Positions 2,092 to 52,737 of a DNA stretch of 52,737 nucleotides are shown in pieces; within the stretch, counting starts at the first letter, position 1; each line of letters begins with the position of its first letter. Made by a program: the position numbers and the translations under genes. The notes under the pieces were generated by a model. It made no database searches. It was not told the origin of the DNA and was given only the letters and a program-made list of their open reading frames with translations. The DNA is from Octopus sinensis (Eukaryota): positions 1-52,737 of the forward strand of contig NW_021833979.1 of assembly GCF_006345805.1 (NCBI RefSeq). The letters run 5' to 3'.

Positions 2092-3302
2092 TGGGGGGGT
2101 GCAGAAATATAGGGGAGCACCAGTGGGAGGGGTGGTTCAGAGGACAGGTACTAGGCAAGTAGAACGTAGGATATCGAGAGAGGGGTAATGCATGGTGAAA
2201 TAGCGTATTGAAGAGGGGGGTTCAAAGAGTAGACACCTATAATGTGGTGGGGGGTGCAGAAATATAGGGGAGCACCAGTGGGAGGGGTGGTTCAGAGGAC
2301 AGGTTCTAGGCAAGTAGAACGTAGGATATCAGAGAAGGGGTAAATGCATGGTGAATAGCGTATTGAAGAGGGGCGTTCAAGAGTAGACACCTATAATGGT
2401 GGTGGGGGGGGTGCAGAAATATAGGGGAGCACCATGAGAGGGGTGGTTCAGAGGACAGGTTCTAGGCAAGTAGAACGTAGGATATCGAGAGAGGGGTAAT
2501 GCATGGTGAAATAGCGTATTGAAGAGGGGCGTTCAAAGAGTAGACACCTATAATGGTGGTGGGGGGGGGTGCAGAAATATAGGGGAGCACCAGTGGGAGG
2601 GGTGGTTCAGAGGACAGGTTCTAGGCAAGTAGAACGTAGGATATCGAGAGAGGGGTAATGCATGGTGAAATAGCGTATTGAAGAGGGGCGTTCAAAGAGT
2701 AGACACCTATAATGGTGGTGGGGGGGTGCAGAAATATAGGGGAGCACCAGTGGGAGGGGTGCATCAGAGGACAGGTTCTAGGCAAGTAGAACGTAGGATA
2801 TCGAGAGAGGGGTAATGCATGGTGAAAATATCGTATTGAAGAGGGCGTTCAAAGAGTAGACACCTATAATGGTGGTGGGGGGGGGGGGGGGGGGGGGGGG
2901 TGCAGAAATATAGGGGAGCACCAGTGGGAGGGGTGGTTCAGAGGACAGGTTCTAGGCAAGTAGAACGTAGGATATCGAGAGAGGGGTAATGCATGGTGAA
3001 ATAGCGTATTGAAGAGGGGGGTTCAAAGAGTAGACACCTATAATGGTGGTGGGGGGGGTGCAGAAATATAGGGGAGCACCAGTGGAGGGGTGGTTCAGAG
3101 GACAGGTTCTAGGCAAGTAGAACGTAGGATATCAAGAGAGGGGTAATGCATGGTGAAATAGCGTATTGAAGAGGGGGGTTCAAAGAGTAGACACCTATAA
3201 TGGTGGTGGGGGGGTGCAGAAATATAGGGGAGCACCAGTGGGAGGGGTGGTTCAGAGGACAGGTTCTAGGCAAGTAGAACGTAGGATATCAAGAGAGGGG
3301 TA

Positions 3303-3304
<2 letters not shown>
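2092..3304. repeat. ~157-bp G-rich minisatellite, ~7.5 units
   Basis: The anchor gcagaaatataggggagcacc recurs at 2101, 2256, 2413, 2571, 2728, 2902, 3060 and 3216. The poly-G tract varies in length. Confidence 0.95.
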
Positions 3305-3341
<37 letters not shown>

Positions 3342-19984: not shown

Positions 19985-21684
19985 TTCCATCTTCATCACC
20001 ACTGACATCGGACTCTATATCTACTATGCAATTTACACCAGCAATGCTGCAACGCCACCTTAAGAATAAACGCAATTATGCCTCTCCTGGTCTCGATGGT
20101 GTTACATACCTACTTCTCAAACGCGGTGGGTACTTTCTTCTAAGCCAACTTTTTCTATTCTTCCAATTCTGTCTCGACAATGGTGTTACTCCAGAACAGT
20201 GGAAAACTGCCAGTGTCATCCCTCTGTTAAAAAAAGGCGACCGCACATCGCCTGTCAACTATTGCCCCATCAGTCTTACTAGCTGCATCGCCAAACTGAT
20301 GGAATCCTGTATCAGAGAAACCCTCTGGAACTTCTGGAAGTCTCACAGCCTCATCCAGCCGTCACAATTCGGATTTATTCCTAACTCCAGCTGCTGTAAT
20401 CAACTCATCGAGTTTCTTGAGGACGTTACCCAAATCACTGATCGTGGATCCTGGGTGGATGTTGTTTACCTGGACTTCGCTAAGGCTTTTAACTCTGTGC
20501 CACACAAAAGACTTATGGTGAAGCTTTCTGCGTTGGGTGTAAGAGACGAACTCTATAACTGGTTGAAGTCCTTTATTTTCAGCCGAAAAGAGGTTGTCAC
20601 AGTTCTAGGACAGCACTCTTCGCCCTATGAGATGACATCTGGTGTACCACAGGGATCTGTTCTTGGCCCCCTTTTATTTGTTGCATATGTTAATGACATA
20701 GATGCCTACTTAAAGAATGCCACAGTGCTGAAATATGCAGATGACATCAAGCTGTACCTCGAAATAAAGAGGTCAAATCCTGTAAACTATAGATCTCTAT
20801 TGCAAGCAGACCTGGACACAATGCAGCAGTGGATCATGGACTGGCAACTCAAGCTGGCTGTGGACAAATGTACCACCATGCATTTTGGGAGTAGAAACCC
20901 AGCGTCCACCTACTCCCTCCACAACACTAGTCTCAAAAAGTCTTCATGTGAACGTGACCTGGGTGTTATTGTCGACAGTGATTTGCGTTGGACAAAACAC
21001 ATCGCTGAAATTGTCAAGAAGGCTGAGGGTGTCTTGGCATCACTCACCAAATCCTTTGTGAGCCGCTCTCCGGCTATCTATCTGCGGCTTTATATAGCTA
21101 TGGTAAGACCTCACCTGGAATTTGCATCACCGGTCTAGAACCCCTATCTTGCCCAGGATATCAATCGTCTGAAAGCTGTTCAGCGACGTGCAACCAAAAG
21201 AATACCCTCCATCAGGCATTTGCCATATCCTGAACGCCTTACTTCCCTGGGCATAGACACATTGAAACTCCGACGTCTGGAAGCTGACTTGGCAGACATC
21301 CATAAAATTATCAACCATCGTACAAACAATAACTCTGAGCACCTTTTCAAACTCCACCCATCGAACACCCGTGGACATATTTACAAAGTAAGAAAACAGC
21401 ACAGCTCCCATGACTTCAGGAAACATTTTTTCACGCTGAGAGTTGCTGAAGCATGGAATAAACTGCCGGCATCAGTTGTTAGTTGTCGGAGCACTGCATC
21501 TTCAAAACTTCCATGCTTCCTGAGATTCGCCAACACTACACTTGATTTTCTCCCCTCCATACACACACAAGCATGTATCTGACTCATACATTGTTCACTT
21601 TCCAGACATTTTTACATTACTGCATATACTTTATATGCACTTTCTGACAAGTTGTGGTGCACTTGAGCACTGTATACAATAATT

Positions 21685-35098: not shown

Positions 35099-35730
35099 GA
35101 GAGAGAGAGAGATACACACTTGTATACATACATATATACACACACTCTTCACGTTTGTGCTAATTTCCTCCTACCATTTTATAAACTATAAAAAATGTGT
35201 CCAGGATTTCAAATACTTTTACAAGAAGAGAAAGTTTATATTTTTTTGAACAATTTCAAAAATATTTGATGAATTCTAAAGAAAGAAAATGTAAATTATA
35301 TTTAATGACAAAAGGTTTTAGATTTTATTTTGCATGGAAAATTCAAAGTTTGTAAATCAATTTTACAGAAATATAAGCTAAGAAATGAAATAGGTACGTA
35401 ATTGTGTCTTTATTTTTGTCCCACTAACATTGCTTGACAACCGATTTTGGTGTGTTTACATCCCTGTATCTTAAAAGTTCAGCAAAAGACACCAATAAAA
35501 TAAGTACTAGGCTTACAAAGAATAGGTCCCAGGGTCAATTTGTTTGACTAAAGGCAGTGCTCCAGCATGGCCACAGTGAAATGACTGAAACAAGTACAAG
35601 AATAAAAGAATATATATATATACATATATACACGTACACTATATAAATACACACACACACATAATATATACATGTTTATGTAAAAGGGAAATAAAATGTT
35701 GAAGTTGATATTGAAAAGGAGAGAGGGAAT

Positions 35731-36120: not shown

Positions 36121-36305
36121 GACTCATCTGCTACTACATTCTGAGTTCAAATTCCACCAAGGTCAACTTTGCCTTTCATCCTTTTGGGGTCGATTCAATA
36201 AGTTCCAGCTATGCACTGGAGGTGATGTAATTTACTAGTCCCCTGACTGCAAATTTCAGGCCTTGTGCCTATAGTAAGAAAGTATTCTTCTTCTTCTTCT
36301 TCTTC

Positions 36306-36346
<41 letters not shown>

Positions 36347-36710
36347 ATTACTGTGACGAGCTGGCAGAATTGTGAGGATGCAAAGCAAAATGTTGAGCGG
36401 CATTTTGTCCATCTTTACATTCTGAGTTCAAATTCCACCAAGGTTGACTTAGCCTCTCATCCTTTTGGGATCGATGAATTAAGTACTAGTTGAGTACTGG
36501 GGTCAGTGTAATAGACTGGACCCTTCCTTGAACTTGCTGGCCTTGTGCCAAAACTTGAAATCATTTTTATTATATAAAAAAAAAATAAAAGAAATCATTG
36601 CTGTTGTTGTTGTTGTTTTTGCTGCTGCTGCTAATATTATTATTATTGATGTTGTTATTGTTATAGTTATTGATATTCTTCTCTTCTTCTTCTTCTTCTT
36701 CTTATTATTA

Positions 36711-36750
<40 letters not shown>

Positions 36751-37082
36751 ATTACTGTGACGAGCTGGCAGAATTGTGAGGATGCAAAGCAAAATGTTGA
36801 GCGGCATTTTGTCCATCTTTACATTCTGAGTTCAAATTCCACCAAGGTTGACTTAGCCTCTCATCCTTTTGGGATCGATGAATTAAGTACTAGTTGAGTA
36901 CTGGGGTCAGTGTAATAGACTGGACCCTTCCTTGAACTTGCTGGCCTTGTGCCAAAACTTGAAATCATTTTTATTATATTAAAAAAAAAATAAAAGAAAT
37001 CATTGCTGTTGTTGTTGTTGTTTTTGCTGCTGCTGCTAATATTATTATTATTGATGTTGTTATTGTTATAGTTATTGATATT

Positions 37083-37113
<31 letters not shown>

Positions 37114-37380
37114 TTATTATTATTATTATTATTATTAATATTATTATTATTATTAATGTGATGAACAAGCAGAATTGTTACAAAATGCCAGACAAAATAC
37201 TTTGCATCATTTCTTCCAAGTTTACATTTTGAGTTCAAATTCCACCAAGGTTGATTTTGCCCCTCGTCCTTTTGGGATTGATAAAATAAGAACCAGTTAG
37301 GGGCTGGGGGGTGACATAATCAGTTAACCCCCCACACCCAAAATTTCAGGCCTTATGCCTATAGTAGAAAGGATTATTAT
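35878..37380 (+). mobile_element. Head-to-tail array of five tRNA-derived SINEs separated by (ATT)/(CTT)n
   Basis: Copies at about 35878-36085, 36125-36285, 36351-36560, 36755-36965 and 37150-37380 share ctggcagaat...ttctgagttcaaattccaccaagg...ggccttgtgcc. Reverse copies at 29180-29355 and 29655-29860. Confidence 0.8.
36347..37130. repeat. 404-bp tandem duplication
   Basis: attactgtgacgagctgg starts at both 36347 and 36751. The SINE body and the following microsatellites are duplicated almost exactly. Confidence 0.92.
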
Positions 37381-40983: not shown

Positions 40984-41115
40984 ATTCACTATGGAAGACC
41001 AGACTGAAAATACTCAGAAAAGAGCTTTAAGGGGCTCGACACCAAAATGGGATGAAGAAGGAGGTGACAATAAAGGAGACCCTAAAAACTGGGAATAATT
41101 AGAAAACAAGATGTT

Positions 41116-44100
41116 TTGGACAAACACATATCTTATACAAGATTCAATGCCTATGAGGACAAAATTAATTTGTTGATAAATTCTCAGGAAGAAGAATGTA
41201 CTTTTTTTAAAAATATAGGAATGGATACAATTACTTTACAAAAAGAAAATGTTTACAATCAAGAATTAATAATTTCTGGAAAACTAGAATTGTTCCTGGA
41301 ACACTATTTACAGAGAAATAATTTACAAGACAAACACAAAACCATTGAGCCATCAAAATTACCCACAAAATTCCGGCCTCTTTGCCCGGTTGTGACAAGA
41401 GAAGCAAAGATCGAGGAATCTGGAGAAGAATTGGAGAAAAGCATAATATCCAATGTCATTGTCATACGTGAGGGAATGGTAACATATTCCCACCATTTTA
41501 TGACAATATGTTGTTTGTCAAGAAATGGTGACAGAATTGATGTCCATTGTCCATCTTCTGTCACCAATTTCACCAGAATCAGTGAAGACATGGTTCTGGC
41601 AACCCTCCCCTTCCAAGAAATGATTCTTATTATCAGCCCCAAAACCTTTAAGATCAAAAGGATAAAGTTGGGGTTATATATGGTGAGTTACTTGGAAGAT
41701 TCTACACTAATAGGTGTAGAAATGTTTGGTAAAACAGTTTACCAATTTGATTGGGAGGATAACACTATTAACTATCAATTTATTACCAAAGAAACCCCTA
41801 CAGATATTGCTGTAGGGGTCCAGAATATTCTTTTAATATCATTTCCCAGTATTAAAAGAGTAATCTGTTTTAAACTGGATGGCCAACAGTTATGGGAGGT
41901 AGAGACCCATTCTCTGCATCTCCCTAGTAAAATCTCTCTGTACCAAAATTATTTCTATGTCCTCCAGGGACAAATAATTTATAGGATTTCAGCTAAAGGT
42001 GGTGTAACAAGGAGGGACATTGGCAAGAAATGCCGCTCTATTTCTGTTGGTAAAGATACCATTTTGGTAACAGATTATTGCGGCAGACCACATGGTATTC
42101 AAATGAATAAAGACTTTTGGCCCAAACTGTCATACAACCACCAGCTACATACCCCCAGTTTAAAAGACTATATTGATATTGAGGATTGCTACAACATTAC
42201 AAATATTCTACCTATGTCTACATCTTCTATATTAATAATTTACAAAAACAAGAAAGCTAAATTATTCACTGATAATGGGGAAATAATTAACCAAAATAAT
42301 TCAGTTTTCCTTGAGCTTCCTTCTTTCTGTTGTAGAATAAACGCAAACAGATTCCTGGTATTTTATCGTGAAATGAAAGGATTTCAGTATATCACCTGTC
42401 CTGAACTAAGAAAAGGCCCTTTAATGAAAGTCCATACTGATTACATTACACTATGTCATGTTGTATCAAATAAGTGTTTAGCTCTAACCACAAGTGGAAA
42501 CAAAAGCGAGGTCCATATCCTCTTGATCCACGAAGATAAAGTTGACATTGCAGAAAGAATTTCTCTGGGACATCATAATGTCAGCATTGCTGCAACTCCA
42601 ATTAATTTTGTAGTCATAGATGGAAACGAAAATAAAATGGTATTTTATTCCACATGTGGTGAAGAACTTTTTCAAAAATACCTTCCATTCTATGGCCACC
42701 CTCATCACATCTACTCTGATAATGTTTATTTCTATGTCCTCTTCAGAAGACACTGTATTCTCAGATGTTACGATCTATATGGACAAATGAAATGGCAGTG
42801 GGAACTGCCTTTCCCTGTTCACCCTCACATTGCTGTTTTCCAAGGAACTCTTTATGTCCCGGACACTCAACTCAACAGGGTTCTTCTTTACAAGTATCAA
42901 GACCGGTCGTCTGGCTGCCTTTTACCCATTAAAAATCCTTATATCAGAAATCTAAATCTACGACTCAAAGAAAAGGAGAATGACCAAAAACTTGTCATTG
43001 GCGAAATATGTAATCTGTCCAATGGACAGTTGGTGGTGTTCGACATCAACCATGATTGCTTGTTGTACATTTCTGAGGAAGGAGACATTGTGTCCAGATT
43101 ATCTCTGCCGTCTACAGCCACAGATATATGTCGATGGGGTTCTGATCATATAGGGGTCACATTACCCCTACAGAAACAATTAAGGGTCATCGGAAACCTA
43201 TCAAATACAGTGAGAAGTGTATTATTAAGGCAGCCTTATGTACGGGTGTGTAAGATGGGTGAACGTGAAATTGTTTGTTATTGTGATAAACCATCACATT
43301 TAGACATTTTAACTATTAATTATTATAATCAAGTCGAAGTAATTAAGACAATTAATATCCCTGTGTTTGTGAAATCATTATCAATAGACAAGGAAACACT
43401 AAAGCTATTGATTGTTACTAGGGGAAAAGCTTTTCAGTACAACACTAGAATAGGTGGTGGTGGTCATAGAGGTCATAATTTGTTGGTTAATGATCTTGTT
43501 ACTAATAATCATCTTAATTATTATATCGACCTGGTGGATGTATTTTCCAGACACATTTCTCTCAGCGAAATGTTGTCTTCCACTTTATATCTACAGGACC
43601 TGAAAGTTTCTGATAAAGCCAGACATATTCCTCTCCCTAAACATTTGGGAGACAAAGAACCAGTGTGGATTGAACGTTTGGTTATTACAGAAAATAATCT
43701 GATTGCAGGATGTGACAGGAAGAATGGAAACATTAAGATATTCACACTGGATGGTCACCTATTGGATTTAATCAAAGTGAATGTTTATGACAATACTAAA
43801 ATGTGTCGATGGCAGTCAAACACACTGGTCATTACGAATGGGGATTATAAAGATCCTAATAAACACCAACTGTTGACATTAAAAGTGGAATATCCATTGT
43901 CGTTGCTAATTTACCAAACGAGAAATAATTATGATTGTATAGCTTCTTTATCAAATAATCAACTGGTTTTGAGTGAATGGAGAGATGTAAGACATTTGTA
44001 TTTTGTTGAAATTGATGAAATACGTTCGAGTGTGAAGGAAACAAACAAAATAGACATACCTGAACCATTAATAGAGAGAAACGAAGATGGAAAGTATTAT

Positions 44101-46140
44101 GATAGAATCCAGGATATTAAAGTTACTGATGAAGATGTCATCATTGTCTTAAACAAGAAATTCATCATTTTCTTCAACAGTGGTGGTCAATATTTACATT
44201 CAGTCAGACACTACATGAAGTATTTTGGTGATGATGACAGGATGACAATTGATGACAGTTTTTTGTACATTTATGGTCGGTGGGAGAAATGTTTTCGTTT
44301 ATCTGGATATAAAAAAATTTTGTGTTTGACCCAGAATGGGGAATACGAGAGAATATTTTTAAACAAAAGAATTTTTAAACATAAATTAGATTTCTCCAGT
44401 ATAGACTGTAAAGGACCAAGGTTTGTTGGAAGCCATAGGAGGGGATGGAGGAATGAATTGTATGTTGAAGGGTTGTTTATGGTGAATCGAGACAGCTTCC
44501 CGGTTGTTCGTTTACAAACAGACGAATGTCCTGTTCAAGTAAAAGATTTTGATGTCTCTGAGGAAGGAAAGACAGTTGTGTGTGAAAAAGCCAATAATGG
44601 AAATGTTAAAATATTCGATGAAGACGGCCAGTTGCTACGTCACAGAAAAGTTGCAAGTTTAGTTGGTGGTGTGTGTTTTACACATGAATCACACATAATG
44701 GCCACGGTTCCTAAAAGGAAAGAAATATTTCAACTGAATGGAGAAGATTTGCAGACATCTCAAGTTTGGTCGAGTCTCATCCCTTATGGTGTAATATGGA
44801 GAAAAGTGGGAAATATTTACTTGTGTGTACATAATGAATTGATTGAATGTCATTGCATAAAGATTGATGGGGACCAAGTGAACATTCTGGATTCTGTGTC
44901 GTTATCAAATCTTGATTCTGGTCTTCGTTTCCCTTCCATTACATCTGAAACGAACAAGGAAATATTCAGTAATGAATTAATTAATAAATTGAAATACAGA
45001 AGAGGAGATGGAGATGGAGGAGGAAGAAGAAGAGGTAAATCAGGTGAAATAATTGGTAAAGGTAGATTAAAGGTGAGATGTGGTAATTACATAGCGGAGA
45101 TTAATAATTCAGGAATTGATGAAATATCAGTGAGGAGACTTCCATATAGGACAGCAATGGTCCCTTTTTCCATTCCTGCATTCGAGGAACCTGTTGATTA
45201 TGATTTGAGGGACATTAGGGACCGGAACAGTAAACTAATTAAGTTAGATGAGAATGTGAGTGTGTTGATGTTTCGAGAAAGTGTCACATTAATCAGAACA
45301 ACAACAACAACAGTGGACATACTTCAACATGAACAACAACAACGACCACCACTGGACATATGTCGGTGGACAGAGGAATGTTTCATTGTCGCCTTTGGGA
45401 GAGAAATGAGGGTCTTCAACAGGGATCTCCGTCGTTTAAAAACCATCAGAACTGAGAAATACTACAACAGGATTTATAAATACAACGACAATCAACTCGT
45501 GTGTGGTGGTCATTATATTAGAGACATAACACAAGAAGAGAGAGACAAGAAATACGGAAGAATATGGGAGAACAACAAGGATTACTATTATTGCAAAGAC
45601 CCCGACATCTTTGACTCTTATTATGTGGATGTGGTTGATATCAGCGATGGGAAATGTAAAGATGAAGTGTGTCGTGGGAAGATGGGGAGATCGGGAAGGT
45701 TGGAGGGAGAGGAAGGGGTGGTAGATGTGGGAGTCACATCTTTTGGTGATGTTGTTGTTTTGGGGAGGGAGATGAAGGAGAAGGTGTCTGGATGGAAGGA
45801 AGTTTTTTGTTTTGTGGAATCGTTCAGTGAAAAGTCTTTGGTGAGGAGGATAAGAATAAAAGAAGAAATAATTTTTGGTCGGGAATATTATATTCCAAGA
45901 CCTCATCTGACAATAATTGGTGAATGTGTTTATATAACAGATAGAAGAAACAATATTTACGAAATACCTCGACATATTGAAGAGGAAACATCTGAAGATA
46001 ATCGAAAATATTTACTCCTCAGTGAGGATGATAATGAAGTCTTTGAAGTTCTTGGTTTGGATGTTTCAGAAAATTCTTTTATGGTTTTTGGAATTATTCC
46101 TGGACGTCAATCTTTTGCTTTCTTTTATTTTGACAAATAA
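41116..46140 (+). CDS. Large single-exon cytosolic protein of ~6 tandem NHL/TolB-like beta-propeller modules; true start probably ATG 40991 (1716 aa)
   Basis: A 5025-nt stop-free, high-complexity ORF in otherwise repeat-saturated DNA. Recurrent blade motifs include GNIKIFTLDGHLL / GNVKIFDEDGQLL / AKLFTDNGEII and TDICRWGSDHIGVTLP / TKMCRWQSNTLVIT / LDICRWTEECFIVAF. These resemble the C-terminal propeller of molluscan TRIM-like proteins. The fold assignment is an inference. Confidence 0.88.
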   Translation: MDKHISYTRFNAYEDKINLLINSQEEECTFFKNIGMDTITLQKENVYNQELIISGKLELFLEHYLQRNNLQDKHKTIEPSKLPTKFRPLCPVVTREAKIEESGEELEKSIISNVIVIREGMVTYSHHFMTICCLSRNGDRIDVHCPSSVTNFTRISEDMVLATLPFQEMILIISPKTFKIKRIKLGLYMVSYLEDSTLIGVEMFGKTVYQFDWEDNTINYQFITKETPTDIAVGVQNILLISFPSIKRVICFKLDGQQLWEVETHSLHLPSKISLYQNYFYVLQGQIIYRISAKGGVTRRDIGKKCRSISVGKDTILVTDYCGRPHGIQMNKDFWPKLSYNHQLHTPSLKDYIDIEDCYNITNILPMSTSSILIIYKNKKAKLFTDNGEIINQNNSVFLELPSFCCRINANRFLVFYREMKGFQYITCPELRKGPLMKVHTDYITLCHVVSNKCLALTTSGNKSEVHILLIHEDKVDIAERISLGHHNVSIAATPINFVVIDGNENKMVFYSTCGEELFQKYLPFYGHPHHIYSDNVYFYVLFRRHCILRCYDLYGQMKWQWELPFPVHPHIAVFQGTLYVPDTQLNRVLLYKYQDRSSGCLLPIKNPYIRNLNLRLKEKENDQKLVIGEICNLSNGQLVVFDINHDCLLYISEEGDIVSRLSLPSTATDICRWGSDHIGVTLPLQKQLRVIGNLSNTVRSVLLRQPYVRVCKMGEREIVCYCDKPSHLDILTINYYNQVEVIKTINIPVFVKSLSIDKETLKLLIVTRGKAFQYNTRIGGGGHRGHNLLVNDLVTNNHLNYYIDLVDVFSRHISLSEMLSSTLYLQDLKVSDKARHIPLPKHLGDKEPVWIERLVITENNLIAGCDRKNGNIKIFTLDGHLLDLIKVNVYDNTKMCRWQSNTLVITNGDYKDPNKHQLLTLKVEYPLSLLIYQTRNNYDCIASLSNNQLVLSEWRDVRHLYFVEIDEIRSSVKETNKIDIPEPLIERNEDGKYYDRIQDIKVTDEDVIIVLNKKFIIFFNSGGQYLHSVRHYMKYFGDDDRMTIDDSFLYIYGRWEKCFRLSGYKKILCLTQNGEYERIFLNKRIFKHKLDFSSIDCKGPRFVGSHRRGWRNELYVEGLFMVNRDSFPVVRLQTDECPVQVKDFDVSEEGKTVVCEKANNGNVKIFDEDGQLLRHRKVASLVGGVCFTHESHIMATVPKRKEIFQLNGEDLQTSQVWSSLIPYGVIWRKVGNIYLCVHNELIECHCIKIDGDQVNILDSVSLSNLDSGLRFPSITSETNKEIFSNELINKLKYRRGDGDGGGRRRGKSGEIIGKGRLKVRCGNYIAEINNSGIDEISVRRLPYRTAMVPFSIPAFEEPVDYDLRDIRDRNSKLIKLDENVSVLMFRESVTLIRTTTTTVDILQHEQQQRPPLDICRWTEECFIVAFGREMRVFNRDLRRLKTIRTEKYYNRIYKYNDNQLVCGGHYIRDITQEERDKKYGRIWENNKDYYYCKDPDIFDSYYVDVVDISDGKCKDEVCRGKMGRSGRLEGEEGVVDVGVTSFGDVVVLGREMKEKVSGWKEVFCFVESFSEKSLVRRIRIKEEIIFGREYYIPRPHLTIIGECVYITDRRNNIYEIPRHIEEETSEDNRKYLLLSEDDNEVFEVLGLDVSENSFMVFGIIPGRQSFAFFYFDK

Positions 46141-46428: not shown

Positions 46429-46456
46429 GAAAAAAAGCAACAAGAATGGATTAAAA

Positions 46457-46544
46457 TCTCGGTACGATCGTTTCGTACGAGGACATCTTTAATAAGCTAC
46501 AAAAAATGCAGTGAATACAGATGGCTCGTACTCGTCAGCCGAAA
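46457..46544 (-). ncRNA. Type I hammerhead ribozyme (complete core) in the PLE 3' region
   Basis: Minus strand: UUUCGG-CUGACGA-GUACGAG...CUCGUAC-GAAA-CGAUC-GUA|CCGAGA. Stem II has 7 perfect bp extended by CAUCU/AGAUG, stem III is the palindrome ACGAUCGU, and stem I has 6 bp (one G-U). Predicted cleavage is between 46463 and 46462. Confidence 0.9.
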
Positions 46545-47739
46545 AAACATCAGAGAATTCCCAAACATCAAAAGGGGTAGATACAAAAGAGGTTGTAGGA
46601 TTAACTGCATTGAAGAAAGTTCGATTCATGGAGATCCGATGAAAGGTTTTAAACCTATAGAATTTATGCATGTCTACATATAGCTCATATTGGATATTTG
46701 ATCAAGTTGTATGAAGAAATTTTCGGGTACAGTCATGCAAAATTTCTGAAAATCCGAGTAAGAGGCAAAATGACTGCCACATCATGTAGAGGAAAGTCTG
46801 AGTAAAAACATAGTGACTGTCATATCGTGTAGAGGAACAGATTGTTATTGAAATTTACAAGAATCGCAGATAAGTTCGATTTTTTGGAGATCCGATGAAA
46901 AAGTCTCGAACTTACAAAATTTGTGTATGTCCTTATAGTTCGTAATCCAGTTTTGTGGAGAGATTTAGGGTACAATCATGCGAAAATATCAGGGAGTCCG
47001 AATGAGAAGCAAAAATGGCAGTCTTATATTGTAGTGGTTCAGGTTGTTAATGAAATTTTCAAGAATCACAGAAAGAGGAGGAAGGGGGTAGGAATTTAAT
47101 CAGTTACTGCTATTTAAGCTGTCAAAGAGAAAGGAAAGGGGAAGCTAAGGGGATGGGCACAATTTGATACTAACAAAAGAGTCTAAGTTTGTTTGGAACA
47201 AATTCGAACTGAGGTCAACAATTTATTTCTTTATTTATAAATGTTACTATTAATAGATTGTCAGGTTACAAAGAGGTCATTAGAAAGGAAAGAAAAATGG
47301 GGTTGTTTTTAAATGAAATTAAACTTTTATATTATTATTACACTAAACTATAATACATACATAATGTTTTTAAATGAAATTAAACAATTATATTATTATT
47401 ATACTAAACTATAATACACTACACTATATTATATTATATTATTTTGATATATTATATCACATCACAATACACTACGATAGGTCTGGTATTAGCAGAATTA
47501 ATTTAAAAAAAAATTTTTTTTTTAAATAAAAAAAAAGAAATTAAGAGAATTAACTAACTAATATTTGTAATGGGATAAAAAATAGACTAAGAAATGGAGA
47601 TAAAAATAGAGCAAAATTTAATTATTAATAATATGGTCCAATAGAAATAAATCAAATAATTTAAGTCAATAAGTATTAAATAGTACCATCAGAGAGAGAA
47701 AAAATTATAATCATAGCTAGTTAGAACTTATCTTTCCAG

Positions 47740-48963
47740 TTAAATATATAATATACTATGTAGGAGTGATATGTAAGTCAAAATGAATTTTATGTAAAAT
47801 GATTCCAGTATACAGTTATCAATTGAGATATAATTTAAAATATCATTTAAAATATTTAAGAGTCTTAACCGAGCATGTATACAAGAATTTCCAAGTTCAA
47901 TTCTGCTGTTTAATTGAATTTCTCCATTATTTTTATACATTAGTATTTCAAATGCTTCCATGGAGCAAAGTTGGCAGCCTACTCTGCTATTTTTATAGGG
48001 TTTTGCTCTTCTGACTAATTCCCAATTAAGGTTATATTTGATGTTATTGTTTTTTAGTTCCCAAATTTTACTAGAAAGAGTAGTGCTATCAGCCTTATGA
48101 CGTAATTTAAAAGATGAGAGATGGTTATTCAATCTCTGTTTAAAATTTACAGTGCATCCAACATAAGAGAACTTATTATTATCTGTGGTAACGGAGCACT
48201 TATAGATTATGTTAATTAACCCGCATAAATCAGGGGCCGGGCATTTTGATTTAATTCTGCAGTTACATCTAGGGGCATTATAATTAGAGGTGGAATACCT
48301 TGAGGATAGAAGTCTTATAATACTGTTGCTCGAAGCAGAGCGGGTAAATTTATCATGATTTTGATTATTGTTATTATCTAAAAAAACTCTATCATTATTG
48401 TAGTTAATATTATTATCTAAAACAGTATTATCATTTATAGGTATTCCTACATTTTCATTTGGTTCTAAAGCCCTACTTTCATTATTATTATTATTATTGG
48501 TGCTGCTATCTAAAATAATGTTATCATTATTGCAGTTGATGTTATCTTCTAAAGTAGTATTATCATTTGTCGGTATTCCTACACTATCGTTTGGTTCTAT
48601 AACTCTACTATTATTGCCGATATTGTTGATGCTATTAGTATTGTTGTCGATATTGTTATCCAGATGTGTAGTGTTGTTGCTGATAATGTTGTTACTCTCA
48701 TTCACTGTACTTACATTCATGGTATTATTCCTATTACTAACATAATCATTTCTATTTATGTTATTATTGTTATTAACAATTCCATGGCTTTTGGTTATAT
48801 TTATTTTATGACATTCATTATTGTTATTATTATTATTATTGTTGCAATTATTACTTTTCGTACTGTTATTACAATTTTCCGTTGTATTTTTATTTTTATT
48901 TATTAAATTATTTCTGGCTAGTTTTATGTTATTAATATTGATCTTAGCTATTAAAGTGGACAT
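47740..48963 (-). CDS. PLE ORF C-terminal part: Asn-rich linker + GIY-YIG endonuclease
   Basis: 407-aa ORF. A Cys motif and the YKC..YVG (GIY-YIG-like) motif follow about 230 low-complexity residues. Confidence 0.85.
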   Translation of the reverse strand: MSTLIAKININNIKLARNNLINKNKNTTENCNNSTKSNNCNNNNNNNNNECHKINITKSHGIVNNNNNINRNDYVSNRNNTMNVSTVNESNNIISNNTTHLDNNIDNNTNSINNIGNNSRVIEPNDSVGIPTNDNTTLEDNINCNNDNIILDSSTNNNNNNESRALEPNENVGIPINDNTVLDNNINYNNDRVFLDNNNNQNHDKFTRSASSNSIIRLLSSRYSTSNYNAPRCNCRIKSKCPAPDLCGLINIIYKCSVTTDNNKFSYVGCTVNFKQRLNNHLSSFKLRHKADSTTLSSKIWELKNNNIKYNLNWELVRRAKPYKNSRVGCQLCSMEAFEILMYKNNGEIQLNSRIELGNSCIHARLRLLNILNDILNYISIDNCILESFYIKFILTYISLLHSILYI

Positions 48964-49114
48964 ATTTGGGAGAGTTGAATAAGAAATTCTGACTGTTTTT
49001 TTAGAAATATTTTATGATATCTATGAGAGGATGGGAAATTATTTTCTAGAATTGTTTTGAATCTACCCTGAATATCTGATGAAACCGCACAGTTAAAAGG
49101 GATGTTTAGCCATA

Positions 49115-50092
49115 TTATGTCTTTCTTATTAAATTTCTTAGAATTAGAGTTAGGGCTGCTAGAATTTTTCCCACTAGAGTTAGGGTTATTAGAATTAATC
49201 GTCCCATCATCAGATTCTTGTATTTATTAATGTTCCTGTTAGCATGTTTGCTAGTTTTATCCAAGTTTATTTTACCCTTATTATAAGTATTCTCTGTTAT
49301 GTTTTTATTAATATTCTTAATATCATTAGGGTACTTTGCCGTTGTAAATCTATTTCTACTAACCTTTCTGGTATGGTCATTGTTGTTGTCTATGTTACTA
49401 ATAGTGTGTTTCTTAATTTTAATTTTATTTAAGGTTGCCTTATCAGGGCTATCTGTGTTATGGTCTATGTATTTATCCTTATACTTATCATTACGATTAG
49501 ATGTTGTATTAGATCCACATCTATGTATCTTTTCGACTTGATCATTTTTGTTATTTATGTGGTTATTGCTGTTTAATTTACTTAAAATATTATGATGAGT
49601 TCCTAGTTTTTCCGTATCTTCAAAAGTAATTTTCTGGTTAAATCCTGCTCTAGATAACGCCTCATTGTAATGTCCTGAGTGAGAGTTAAATATATTAAAA
49701 TTGGATGATAATTTGGATATTCTTATGGAAATATTTCTAACTAAGGAATTTATTATATTTGGGGGATGATTAGATAATTTATTTACGTAACTAGTGATTT
49801 CCCCTTCCTTTCTAAATGGATAATGTAGTTTGGAGTTAAGGTCTAAAGTAATATCTAGAAAATTAGCTATTTTAATGTTTGGTTCATAGGTTATGCTAAG
49901 GTTGAAATCTTTAAAGAACCTATTAATCTTCTTTTTAATTCTTTCTATGTGTGATTTATTATTGGTATTTACAACAAACAAAGCATCATCTCTATATAGA
50001 CCACCTTGCAATTCAGGGATCTCTTTATTAATGCATTTCAGTAGATATGCTCCTACTAAATTGGTTACCTCAGCCGAATCACTTGAGCCCAT
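49115..50092 (-). CDS. PLE ORF middle part: RT motifs (YRDD), thumb and linker
   Basis: 325-aa ORF. It joins the flanking ORF segments by -1 frameshifts. Confidence 0.88.
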   Translation of the reverse strand: MGSSDSAEVTNLVGAYLLKCINKEIPELQGGLYRDDALFVVNTNNKSHIERIKKKINRFFKDFNLSITYEPNIKIANFLDITLDLNSKLHYPFRKEGEITSYVNKLSNHPPNIINSLVRNISIRISKLSSNFNIFNSHSGHYNEALSRAGFNQKITFEDTEKLGTHHNILSKLNSNNHINNKNDQVEKIHRCGSNTTSNRNDKYKDKYIDHNTDSPDKATLNKIKIKKHTISNIDNNNDHTRKVSRNRFTTAKYPNDIKNINKNITENTYNKGKINLDKTSKHANRNINKYKNLMMGRLILITLTLVGKILAALTLILRNLIRKT

Positions 50093-50398
50093 AGGAATAT
50101 CGAAAAAGTTAGGGGTATCAGCTCTGGTCCATAATTTTCCCTCAAATTCATAAATGCTTTCCTAGCTAAAAGTATAATGTCTATTTCTTCTCTAGATATG
50201 AGGGAGCGATTCATCGCGAATATAAGCGATTTATTTAGTAGGATAGGGGAAATGCTAGAGTAGTAGTTTTTATATCGAATTGAATGAAGGCTAAATTATT
50301 CGTATTAGTTAGGGAATTAAACCATTTAAGGACCTCATCGGTATTTATCCACAGGCTTAAGGGAAGAAGTGGGGTTATTTGGGGTAAGATATTATCTA

Positions 50399-50453
<55 letters not shown>

Positions 50454-50644
50454 TGCATGTATTATAGGAATGTCTGGTCCGAAACCAGAGACTTTCATAA
50501 TCATTGATTCTCCATTAAAAGGCAGACGACCAACAACAACAACGACAGACGACGACCACCACCACCGCCGCCTCCATCATCATCGTCATCGTCATCATCA
50601 TCACCACCGACGCCTCCATCATCGTCATCATCATCATCATAGCT

Positions 50645-50960
50645 GGTCATTTTTCATGCTAGAAATAGAAACCACTTTATTTTTCATATAAAATTTGAAG
50701 GACAGATAAGAAGCATTCATAAATAAAATTGATCTGTATATGGTCTCATTTCATGCTAGAAAGAGCCACAAAAACCTTCACATTTTTGTTTCATCACAAA
50801 TAAAAATCGAAGGACAACTTACAAAGCATCCATGTCAAATATTGTCCAATAGATGGCCTAACATCATGTTAGAAATAACAGCCAAATACTCTGAAATTTG
50901 TATCGTTTTTCTTAAAAAAAGTGAAGGACACTTTAAGAAGCAACTCTGAAAATATTGTCC
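50645..50960. repeat. Degenerate ~110-bp tandem repeat, 3 units
   Basis: tcatg(c/t)tagaaa occurs at 50654, 50751 and 50864; gaaggac occurs at 50697, 50809 and 50923. Confidence 0.55.
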
Positions 50961-51043
50961 TGCGGCGGTTTAAGTGTAAAATATTATAAAAGTATGCATC
51001 TATGAGTTTTATGTGTTTAAAAAACATAGCAAAACATGTGTGT

Positions 51044-51074
<31 letters not shown>

Positions 51075-52687
51075 AATTATTGTATACAGTGCTCAGGTGC
51101 ACCACAACTTGTCAGAAAGTGCATATAAAGTACATGCAGTAGTGTAGAAATGTCTGGGTGTATGGAGGGGGGAAAATCAAGTGTAGTGTTGGCGAATCTC
51201 AGGAAGCATGGAAGTCTTGAAGGAAGCAGTGCTCCGACAACTAACAACCGATGTCGGCAGTTTATTCCACGCTTCAGCAACTCTCAGCGTGAAAAAATGT
51301 TTCCTGAAGTCATGGGAGCTGTGCTGTTTTCTTACTTTGTAAATATGTCCACGGGTGTTAGATGGGTGGAGTTTGAAGAGGTGCTCAGAGTTATTGTTTG
51401 TACGATGGTTGATAATTTTATGGGTGTCTGCCAAGTCAGCTGCCAGACGTCGGAGTTTCAATGTGTCCATGCCCAGGGAGGTAAGGCGTTCAGGATATGG
51501 CAAATGCCTGATGGAGGGTATTCTTTTGGTTGCACGTCGCTGAACAGCTTCCAGACGATTGATGTCCTGGGCAAGATAGGGGCTCCAGACCGGCGATGCA
51601 AACTCCAGGTGAGGTCTTACCATAGCTATATAAAGCCGCAGATAGATAGCCGGAGAGCAGCTCACAAAGGATTTAGTGAGTGATGCCAAGACACCCTCAG
51701 CCTTCTTGACAATTTTAGCGATGTGTTTTGTCCAACGCAAATCACTGTCGACAATAACACCCAGGTCACGTTCACATGAAGACTTTTTGAGACTAGTGTT
51801 GTGGAGGGAGCAGGTGGACGCTGGGTTTCTCCTCCCAAAATGCATGGTGGTACATTTGTCCACAGCCAGCTTGAGTTGCCAGTCCATGATCCACTGCTGC
51901 ATTGTGTCCAGGTCTGCTTGTAATAGAGATCCATAGTGTATAGGATTTGACCTCTTTATTTCGAGGTACAGCTTGATGTCATCTGCATATTTCAGCACTG
52001 TGGCATTCTTTAAGTTGGCATCTATGTCATTAACATATGCAACAAATAAAAGGGGGCCAAGAACAGATCCCTGCGGCACACCAGATGTCATCTCAGAGGG
52101 CGAAGAGTGCTGTCCTAGAACTGTGACAACCTCTTTTCGGCCGAAAATAAAGGACTTTAACCAGTTATAGAGTTCGTCTCTTACACCCAACGCAGAAAGC
52201 TTCACCATAAGTCTTTTGTGTGGCACAGAGTTAAAAGCCTTAGCAAAGTCCAGGTAAACAACATCCACCCAGGATCCACGATCAGTGATTTGGGTAACGT
52301 CCTCAAGAAACTCGATGAGTTGATTACAGCAGTTGGAGTTAGGAATAAATCCGAATTGTGACGGCTGGATGAGGCTGTGAGACTTCCAGAAGTTCCAGAG
52401 GGTTTCTCTGATACAGGATTCCATCAGTTTGGCGATGCAGCTGGTAAGACTGACGGGGCGATAGTTGACAGGCGATGTGCGGTCGCCTTTTTTGAACAGA
52501 GGGATGACACTGGCAGTTTTCCACTGTTCTGGAGTAACACCATTGTCAAGACAGAATTGGAAGAATAGAGAAAGTTGGCTTAGAAGAAAGTACCCACCGC
52601 GCTTTAGAAGTAGGTACGTAACACCATCGAGACCAGGAGAGGCATAATTGCGTTTATTCTTTAGGTGGCGTTGCAGCATTGCTGGTT
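51044..52687 (-). mobile_element. CR1-like LINE, 5'-truncated, with uninterrupted 504-aa RT/C-terminal ORF
   Basis: ORF 51177-52691 is open to the natural stop and contains YADD. The tail is seen as (taa)n at 51044-51072. It is an inverted, near-identical partner of 19985-21708. Confidence 0.95.
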
Positions 52688-52737
52688 GCATATGGAGGTA
52701 TATGTAGGTATATACATGTGTATAAAGGTATTTTTGT

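Follow-up and report, generated by a model that had tools for sequence, protein, structure and literature searches.

The locus

The sequence analysed here, which we call the window, is a stretch of 52,737 nucleotides from Octopus sinensis (NCBI RefSeq assembly GCF_006345805.1, contig NW_021833979.1, forward strand), and it constitutes a complete unplaced scaffold (C10450, 52.7 kb) of a 2.72-Gb assembly. Its most prominent feature is an open reading frame (ORF) at 41116..46140 on the plus strand that encodes a member of an octopod family of proteins built from tandem propellers of the NHL type. A first-pass annotation had singled this frame out as the only long one in 52 kb, with 1674 stop-free codons, and this proved correct: the ORF comprises 1674 codons and a stop codon (1684 codons from stop to stop, counted from 41086) and is the sole frame longer than 520 residues, and the remaining frames of at least 200 residues are transposon genes. 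Given the base composition of the window, a run of 1674 codons without a stop has a probability of about 7e-56.

The same annotation had the gene begin at 40991. There is a real ATG at this position, and it opens the N-terminus that is found in intact relatives (MEDQTENT...), but in the window scaffold its frame is shifted by one base from that of the long ORF, which runs from a TTG start codon at 41116 to 46140. An annotated O. sinensis protein, LOC118768538 isoform X2, agrees with the ORF in all but one of 1014 aligned residues (1013 identical), the single mismatch being the TTG start read as methionine. The gene is divided as follows, with module boundaries set in this analysis and given in ORF residues (N-terminal region, then modules M1-M6 to residue 1674); the support for each part is given last.

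40991..41093, plus strand: 5' end of the gene, from the start codon over ~35 codons (MEDQTENT...KNWE), not in the frame of the long ORF; match to intact relatives
41116..41427, plus strand: N-terminal non-propeller region, residues 1-104, looks helical by eye; family alignments
41428..42150, plus strand: propeller 1 (M1), residues 105-345, NHL-like, conserved among paralogues; AlphaFold2, hhalign, omega
42151..42945, plus strand: propeller 2 (M2), residues 346-610, NHL-like, conserved; AlphaFold2, hhalign, omega
42946..43620, plus strand: propeller 3 (M3), residues 611-835, NHL-like, shortened in this copy; AlphaFold2, hhalign, omega
43621..44481, plus strand: propeller 4 (M4), residues 836-1122, best NHL match, one hypervariable face; AlphaFold2, hhalign, profile search, omega
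44482..45150, plus strand: module 5 (M5), residues 1123-1345, NHL-like over its first ~100 residues, fold poorly predicted; hhalign
45151..46140, plus strand: propeller 6 (M6), residues 1346-1674 and the stop codon; AlphaFold2, hhalign, omega

Positions 31799-51824 of the window align to C30:8012000-8031999, on the opposite strand of a chromosome-scale contig of 15.1 Mb, with 99.7% identity, and the differences over the aligned span are mostly single-base indels in homopolymers or microsatellites. Because of this near-identity, the window looks, as far as sequence can tell, like a redundant scaffold or haplotig of the C30 locus. Within the gene, the two versions differ at only three places, each by one base in a homopolymer run. 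The A at 41093 is absent from the window and present in C30, where the frame is restored, and its absence accounts for the 5' frameshift of the window copy; the A at 44158 is absent from C30, which accounts for a shortened annotated isoform of 1075 residues; and the T at 45803 is likewise absent from C30. These three differences may be assembly errors or real alleles.

Six NHL-type propellers in tandem

Because self-BLASTP of the ORF protein returned no internal repeats, profile methods were needed to recognise its modules. When 120-residue pieces of the family alignment were compared profile against profile, residues 621-724, 845-952, 1128-1238 and 1371-1466 matched one another with 76-94% probability, and residues 241-283 matched 541-582 with 75%. 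Whole modules could be aligned in register (M2-M4 over 177 columns at 94.5%, M4-M6 over 178 columns at 96.4%), and reversed-profile controls for these comparisons did not exceed 3%. Our boundaries fall within 15-87 nt of the six module starts that had been read from the sequence by eye, and the motifs then described as shared do recur once per module, as in the case of C(R/F)(W/T/I) at residues 406, 672, 897, 1187 and 1416.

AlphaFold2 was run on two pieces of the ORF with family alignments of 24 rows, all from octopus, and blades were counted from the resulting strand lists, without model coordinates. The first piece (residues 100-870; mean predicted local distance difference test score, pLDDT, of 71.9) gave three all-beta domains of 23, 24 and 15 strands corresponding to M1-M3, with pLDDT of about 80-89 in M1. 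The second (residues 830-1674; mean pLDDT 66.9) gave 24 strands for M4, at a pLDDT of about 80-93, and 25 strands for M6, both with good confidence. The 23-25 strands of M1, M2, M4 and M6 correspond to about six blades of four, and the 15 strands of M3 in the window copy to about four blades, after which comes a low-confidence stretch. Foldseek searches of the Protein Data Bank (PDB) yielded 500 matches at E<=0.001 for each model; all 50 of those listed are propeller proteins, and the matches include IFT-A, Utp21, DDB1 and LRP4. Against a viral structure library, the match of one module to a 262-residue NHL-repeat protein of a giant virus reached a target-normalised template modelling (TM) score of 0.69.

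The type of propeller was established with a profile built from the NHL domains of RING/B-box/NHL hits and compared with each module by hhalign. M4 matched it best (99.4%, E 1e-21, 219 columns), followed by M6 (98.2% over 195 columns), M3 (97.4%), M2 (95.2%) and M1 (95.1% over 209 columns), and M5 matched at 88.5% over 97 columns only; reversed controls remained at or below 3%. This range of 88.5-99.4% agrees with the earlier suggestion that the modules resemble the NHL-like propeller of TRIM/B-box-type families. The family hidden Markov model (HMM) also has weak matches (E 7e-9 to 6e-4) to single-propeller RING/B-box/NHL proteins, including some from a cuttlefish and a freshwater mussel. Pfam and PDB sequence searches with the whole window protein returned no match, and hmmscan gave no match to Pfam NHL (PF01436) even with an E limit of 10; for P0060, a divergent member of the family, the Pfam NHL match is below threshold, at 18.5 bits against a cut-off of 20. 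Thus, the chain consists of six NHL-type propellers in tandem, five of them confident. The proposal of about six beta-propellers stands for these five modules, whereas M5, with its pLDDT below 50 and its short profile match, is weakly supported as a full propeller.

Intact family proteins begin with an N-terminal region of about 200 residues, made up of a basic stretch followed by a domain of about 100 residues; by eye, the former looks disordered and the latter helical. The copies combine similar bodies with two or more types of N-terminal region, and no relatives of the region were found by Pfam or PDB profile matching or by comparison with the NHL profile. Pfam scans of the window protein and of the N-terminal regions of 11 members detected neither RING nor B-box, and a crude hydropathy scan detected no membrane segment (maximum 1.31 over 19 residues) and only hydrophilic N-termini with no signal peptide, all of which had been anticipated from the sequence. 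Since there is no mark of secretion or membrane insertion, the proteins are most likely intracellular, as judged from these scans.

An octopod family arrayed on a small chromosome

The ORF had been described as an orphan, which it is not: the same genome holds about 125 matching places, and there are dozens of annotated relatives in three other octopod species. An indexed protein search recovered 55 relatives of 40-100% identity, from O. vulgaris, O. sinensis and O. bimaculoides only; their typical full length is 1780-1800 residues, and they contain no Pfam domain apart from those in a few models apparently fused with neighbouring genes. An exhaustive search of 1.84 billion representative proteins with a family profile of six sequences gave 36 hits, among which the full-length relatives are from octopods only. 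Argonauta hians contributes two relatives of 1913 and 1925 residues (~38% identity), and a divergent group of relatives (~29% identity) is conserved in all three Octopus species. The family is therefore lineage-specific, as had been proposed, but at the level of octopods rather than of cephalopods as a whole, since full-length relatives were not found in other cephalopods. No paper describing a six-propeller family was found in the literature that we searched; the gene-family expansions discussed in cephalopod genome papers are those of protocadherins, G-protein-coupled receptors and C2H2 zinc fingers.

Searching the O. sinensis genome with a 299-residue piece of module 4 yielded at least 142 matches, representing about 125 distinct places by our own count. 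Redundant scaffolds such as the window inflate copy counts in this assembly. C30 carries 56 of the ~125 places, most densely at 4.3-5.5 Mb and 7.97-9.0 Mb; the others lie mostly on small unplaced scaffolds, some of them necessarily redundant, and a few are on C1, C10, C25, C27, C28 and C29. Frames of at least 1600 residues are open at about 34 places, and the remainder are shortened or contain stops; the C30 copies that we fetched are intact in 16 of 16 cases (1793-1934 residues). All relatives with fetched loci are encoded by a single exon. Taken together, the family is restricted to octopods, multi-copy, intron-less and mostly arrayed on one small chromosome, and its copies are often broken.

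Homology between C30 copies extends beyond the ORF by variable distances, often ~1 kb upstream and 0.3-2 kb downstream, which indicates segmental duplication and fits neither a mobile element with fixed ends nor processed retrocopies. Either of the latter might have been suggested by the single exon, and we reject both on account of the variable flanks and the chromosomal clustering. A ~230-bp element at 35402-35630 of the window, probably a short interspersed nuclear element (SINE), recurs many times in the flanks of family members of all three Octopus species with 75-83% identity.

The divergent member P0051, whose protein is 44% identical to that of the window, stands alone on a large chromosome (L034, G000:C10:36162000-36171999), and its locus is 98.6% identical at the nucleotide level between O. 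vulgaris (L001) and O. sinensis (L034), with both frames intact; such single-copy members, which lie outside the array, thus behave like ordinary genes. This figure also bears on a broken O. vulgaris copy (L005 3608-10955, minus strand; OX597841.1), which has flanks in common with the window gene at ~90% identity. Three frameshifts break its reading frame into four pieces, and an intact copy of 1784 residues lies 17 kb away on the other strand, an instance of broken and intact members as neighbours in the array. We considered this copy as a disrupted orthologue of the window gene and rejected that assignment: because true orthologous loci are 98.6% identical and these are only ~90% identical, it is a paralogue.

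Among the annotated relatives, several appear as fusions (P0055, P0071 and P0116, from a 12.0-Mb O. vulgaris contig, as well as P0002 and P0008), which carry ankyrin repeats or the name of a 'MIB2-like' E3 ligase, or else C2H2 zinc fingers or DUF4371. All of these may be annotation fusions with neighbouring genes; an ankyrin or E3 fusion, if real, would inform on the output of the family.

An atypical copy

The window copy was compared with 11 relatives from other species and with 16 intact copies from its own genome. It alone has lost a conserved block of propeller 3 (QMVPSVLMSQVKRP...FAINDQ; 53 alignment columns), the deletion falling after residue 785 (nt 43470/43471), and it alone lacks 14 residues of the N-terminal domain. 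Together with the 1-nt frameshift at the 5' end, these two deletions make the gene a slightly damaged member of the family. The propeller 3 deletion adjoins an insert rich in Gly, Ser and His, the length of which varies widely among copies, and it is likely to have arisen by slippage or unequal exchange. The insert consists of SDGSISSS and GGGHHRPLR repeats, and the deletion starts exactly there; in some of the C30 copies (L018-L033), the region corresponding to window residues 780-786 holds a low-complexity insert of up to ~150 residues.

The frame itself has nonetheless stayed open. Had the sequence drifted neutrally for half the synonymous distance to its nearest sampled paralogue (d = 0.045), about nine stop codons would be expected in the ORF and none is present; in simulations of such drift, 0 of 2000 remained open. 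The earlier argument from the open frame to selection is borne out by these numbers, which support the conclusion that the frame was kept open by selection. We regard the window copy as an atypical and probably impaired member of the family.

Selection along the chain

At the level of whole genes, dN/dS is 0.36-0.60 among six members from three species, and among 17 O. sinensis copies it has a median of 0.67 and a range of 0.5-1.1. Such averages conceal large differences among modules. These were measured as the ratio of nonsynonymous to synonymous differences per site (pN/pS; Nei-Gojobori, with bootstrap over codons) and as omega, the dN/dS ratio estimated by maximum likelihood (GY+F3X4, gap-filtered codons) and tested against omega = 1 by twice the difference in log-likelihood (2dlnL).

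M1: pN/pS 0.37, omega 0.30, 2dlnL 117.2
M2: pN/pS 0.49, omega 0.58, 2dlnL 19.2
M3: pN/pS 0.37, omega 0.40, 2dlnL 37.9
M4: pN/pS 1.32, omega 1.73, 2dlnL 28.2
M5: pN/pS 0.69, omega 0.78, 2dlnL 1.5 (not significant)
M6: pN/pS 1.44, omega 1.68, 2dlnL 15.8
M4, variable-face loops (84 codons): omega 3.10, 2dlnL 47.5
M4, other-face loops: omega 0.22, 2dlnL 23.3
M4, strands: omega 1.84, 2dlnL 17.3

The values for M1-M3 show purifying selection on the first three propellers. In M4 and M6, pN/pS was at or below 1 in less than 1% of bootstrap samples, and M5 is the most conserved module at the DNA level (pN 0.024, pS 0.035).

To locate the variation within M4, the AlphaFold2 strand list was laid over propeller 4 and pN was measured loop by loop. 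Loops that follow odd-numbered strands (n=12; residues 840-851, 868-871, 888-894, 911-912, 935-938, 955-959, 981-999, 1013-1015, 1032-1042, 1057-1065, 1083-1092 and 1110-1111) have pN of 0.13-0.61, and those that follow even-numbered strands (n=11) have pN of 0-0.064, with no overlap between the sets (Mann-Whitney p 5e-5). Because successive loops of a four-stranded blade lie on opposite faces, one whole face of M4 is hypervariable. M6 resembles M4 in that alternate loops are hypervariable in its last three blades (residues 1494-1644; p 0.002). As placed on the predicted fold, positive selection thus acts on one face of M4 and on part of one face of M6. In older comparisons, those between species, dN is still highest in M4 and M6, with omega below 1.

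Synonymous divergence is also uneven: among the modules, pS has a maximum of 0.31, in M1, and a minimum of 0.035, in M5, and in one pair of copies dS is 0.81 in M1 and 0.05 in M5. A many-fold change of this kind within a single gene indicates that copies exchange segments.

Neighbouring elements

The other features of the window are repeats and mobile elements. Downstream of the gene, a block at ~46431-50398, which may be a Penelope-like retroelement, contains a GIY-YIG frame rich in runs of Asn and a second frame with no Pfam match. This block is absent from O. vulgaris L005 although both flanks are shared, and it is therefore a separate insertion beside the gene. The two frames with a reverse-transcriptase domain probably belong to elements of the long interspersed nuclear element (LINE) type. 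A G-rich tandem array near the beginning of the window explains why GC content (0.47) and GC skew (0.44) rise abruptly in its 2-kb bin. At 36285-37298, a 404-bp unit is repeated 2.5 times.

2093-3305: G-rich tandem array, period 157 (also 488), 7.6 copies, 93% matches
20026-21138, plus strand: reverse-transcriptase frame, 370 residues, Pfam RVT_1 E 3e-34
47740-48963, minus strand: GIY-YIG frame
49115-50092, minus strand: second frame of the block, 325 residues
51177-52691, minus strand: reverse-transcriptase frame, 504 residues, Pfam RVT_1 E 1e-36

Interpretation

The best explanation for these patterns is, in our view, that the octopod six-NHL-propeller family is a germline-encoded recognition repertoire, of which the window holds a probably impaired member; we put the probability of this interpretation at roughly 0.55. 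The variable faces of propellers 4 and 6 would bind diverse, fast-changing ligands, and the conserved part of the chain (M1-M3, perhaps M5), with the N-terminal domain, would provide the link to a partner or assembly shared by the family. In TRIM-NHL proteins the NHL domain binds RNA or protein, and by analogy candidate ligands include RNAs and proteins made by pathogens or selfish elements; their source may be pathogens, transposons or the octopus's own genes. The first-pass annotation had proposed a multi-ligand sensor, and the confinement of positive selection to one face of M4 and part of M6 agrees with this, although the ligand role itself is something that we infer.

A bolder version of this interpretation is that octopods evolved an intracellular variable recognition class of their own, in which six-propeller chains, displaying hypervariable and positively selected binding faces on propellers 4 and 6 and diversified both by their ~100 arrayed paralogues and by segment exchange, would act through a new N-terminal domain in defence against viruses, parasites or selfish elements. 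We offer this only tentatively and consider it clearly less probable than the general interpretation. Either way, the family would matter beyond this locus. Cephalopod immunity is poorly understood, and the family provides a concrete candidate for a lineage-specific recognition system; its ~100 large genes fill a large part of the smallest chromosome, and positive selection extends over an entire face of a propeller. The family is also an example of a new architecture made by multiplying a widespread binding domain, NHL. The result for the window is more modest, since what it holds of the family is one probably impaired copy on a redundant scaffold.

Several points weigh against a recognition repertoire. 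In the youngest pairs of copies (dS ~0.05), whole-gene omega is near 1, which together with the many broken copies implies that part of the family is decaying. The selection tests cover only the intact copies of one genome, with one omega per partition on a fixed tree, and exchange between copies violates the assumption of a single tree. Loop positions derive from a predicted model with a shallow alignment (the 24 octopus rows), and the variable face, assigned by the alternation of loops, may or may not be the canonical 'top' face or the one that binds ligand in known NHL proteins. The low pLDDT of M5 means that this module is not confidently a propeller. The relatives are known from genome annotation only, by way of cluster look-ups, and neither Pfam nor N-terminal profile searches recognised an effector or signalling domain.

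The closest competitor concerns the window alone: its locus could be a pseudogene without a working protein, within a family that works as a whole. We consider this a substantial possibility, if one short of even odds. The frame is offset by 1 nt from the ATG at 40991, the propeller 3 block that is conserved in 27 other sequences and the 14 N-terminal residues are missing here alone, the C30 duplicate has two other single-base indels (44158 and 45803), and most places of the family in the genome are shortened or carry stops. Yet all three differences between the assemblies are single homopolymer bases, which are typical of long-read errors, and the frameshifts may therefore be spurious; neither deletion disturbs the frame; and all 1674 codons are free of stops, against the ~9 that neutral drift would have introduced over the time since the nearest sampled paralogue. 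A different question is what drove the amplification of the family, and here intragenomic conflict could take the place of pathogens, the genes then forming an ampliconic family with germline expression and a part in meiotic drive, or in the recognition of gametes or of self and non-self; their fast evolution would in that case stem from conflict with other genes of the octopus. Dense arrays concentrated on one small chromosome, positive selection on a putative binding face, the frequent birth and breakage of copies and the lack of an immune signalling domain in Pfam scans would all suit such a role. We nevertheless think it unlikely, as the divergent single-copy members elsewhere are stable between species (98.6% nucleotide identity, both intact) and, to our knowledge, C30 is not known as a sex or drive chromosome.

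If the proteins were instead an ordinary structural or scaffold family, their fast amino-acid change would reflect relaxed constraint in redundant copies. The whole-gene omega of 0.5-1.1 and the many broken copies could be read in this way, and multi-propeller proteins, such as the DDB1, IFT-A and Utp21 recovered by Foldseek, are usually scaffolds. But relaxation cannot raise omega above 1, and M4 and M6 lie significantly above it, with 3.1 in the variable loops of M4; moreover, the strict alternation of loops shows a fold being kept while one surface changes, all of which makes this explanation improbable. Least probable by a wide measure is that the ORF travels as the cargo of a transposon or virus, which would explain both its many copies and its lack of introns. 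Its many single-exon copies and the GIY-YIG and reverse-transcriptase frames nearby (47740-52691) might suggest as much. However, Pfam finds no domain of a transposase, integrase, reverse transcriptase or capsid protein either within the conserved unit or next to it; the places are not dispersed, 56 of ~125 being on a single chromosome; the extent of homology varies from copy to copy, with no fixed termini; the neighbouring element at ~46431-50398 is a separate insertion, being absent from the related O. vulgaris locus; and a viral fold library gives only generic propeller matches.

Comparison with known systems

By descent, the nearest known proteins are those of the TRIM-NHL type (TRIM2, TRIM3, TRIM32, TRIM71/LIN-41 and Brat), whose propeller is homologous to those described here; the nearest RING/B-box/NHL protein that we found is one of 656 residues from the cuttlefish Acanthosepion pharaonis (P0077). 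The octopus proteins, which are also probably cytosolic judging by their sequences, would share with them a binding propeller. Unlike TRIM-NHL proteins, they have neither RING nor B-box nor a recognisable coiled coil (by Pfam scans; coiled-coil propensity was not computed), carry six tandem propellers instead of one, begin with an unrelated N-terminal domain, and occur in ~100 arrayed copies with a hypervariable face. Without RING and B-box, the family fails the definition of TRIM.

By architecture, the nearest systems are the multi-propeller scaffolds that formed the top Foldseek matches, i.e., DDB1, CPSF160 and SF3B3 with three WD40-like propellers, LRP4/5/6 with four YWTD propellers, Utp21 and IFT-A, all of which have several propellers in one chain, as does the octopus family. 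There is no relation in sequence, and the type and number of blades differ; in contrast to the octopus genes, the scaffolds are single-copy and encode conserved housekeeping or receptor proteins, and the propellers of LRP are separated by EGF domains.

By mode of evolution, two other systems come close. In the fungal STAND proteins of the NWD/HET-E group, a face of the WD40 propeller is under diversifying selection and repeats are exchanged, which is read as a non-self recognition repertoire; like the octopus family, these are paralogues with a diversifying propeller face and exchange between copies. They belong to another kingdom and combine WD40 repeats with a NACHT NTPase and an effector domain, whereas the octopus family has neither of these domains and is built of NHL propellers. 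Primate TRIM5 and fish finTRIM are clustered, fast-duplicating intracellular proteins with positively selected loops on the surface of B30.2/SPRY, and they resemble the octopus family in this clustering and in the selection on loops; their variable fold is a different one, B30.2/SPRY, and their output is that of a RING E3 ligase. Set against all of these, the octopus family is a known domain, NHL, in a new architecture and a newly expanded family.

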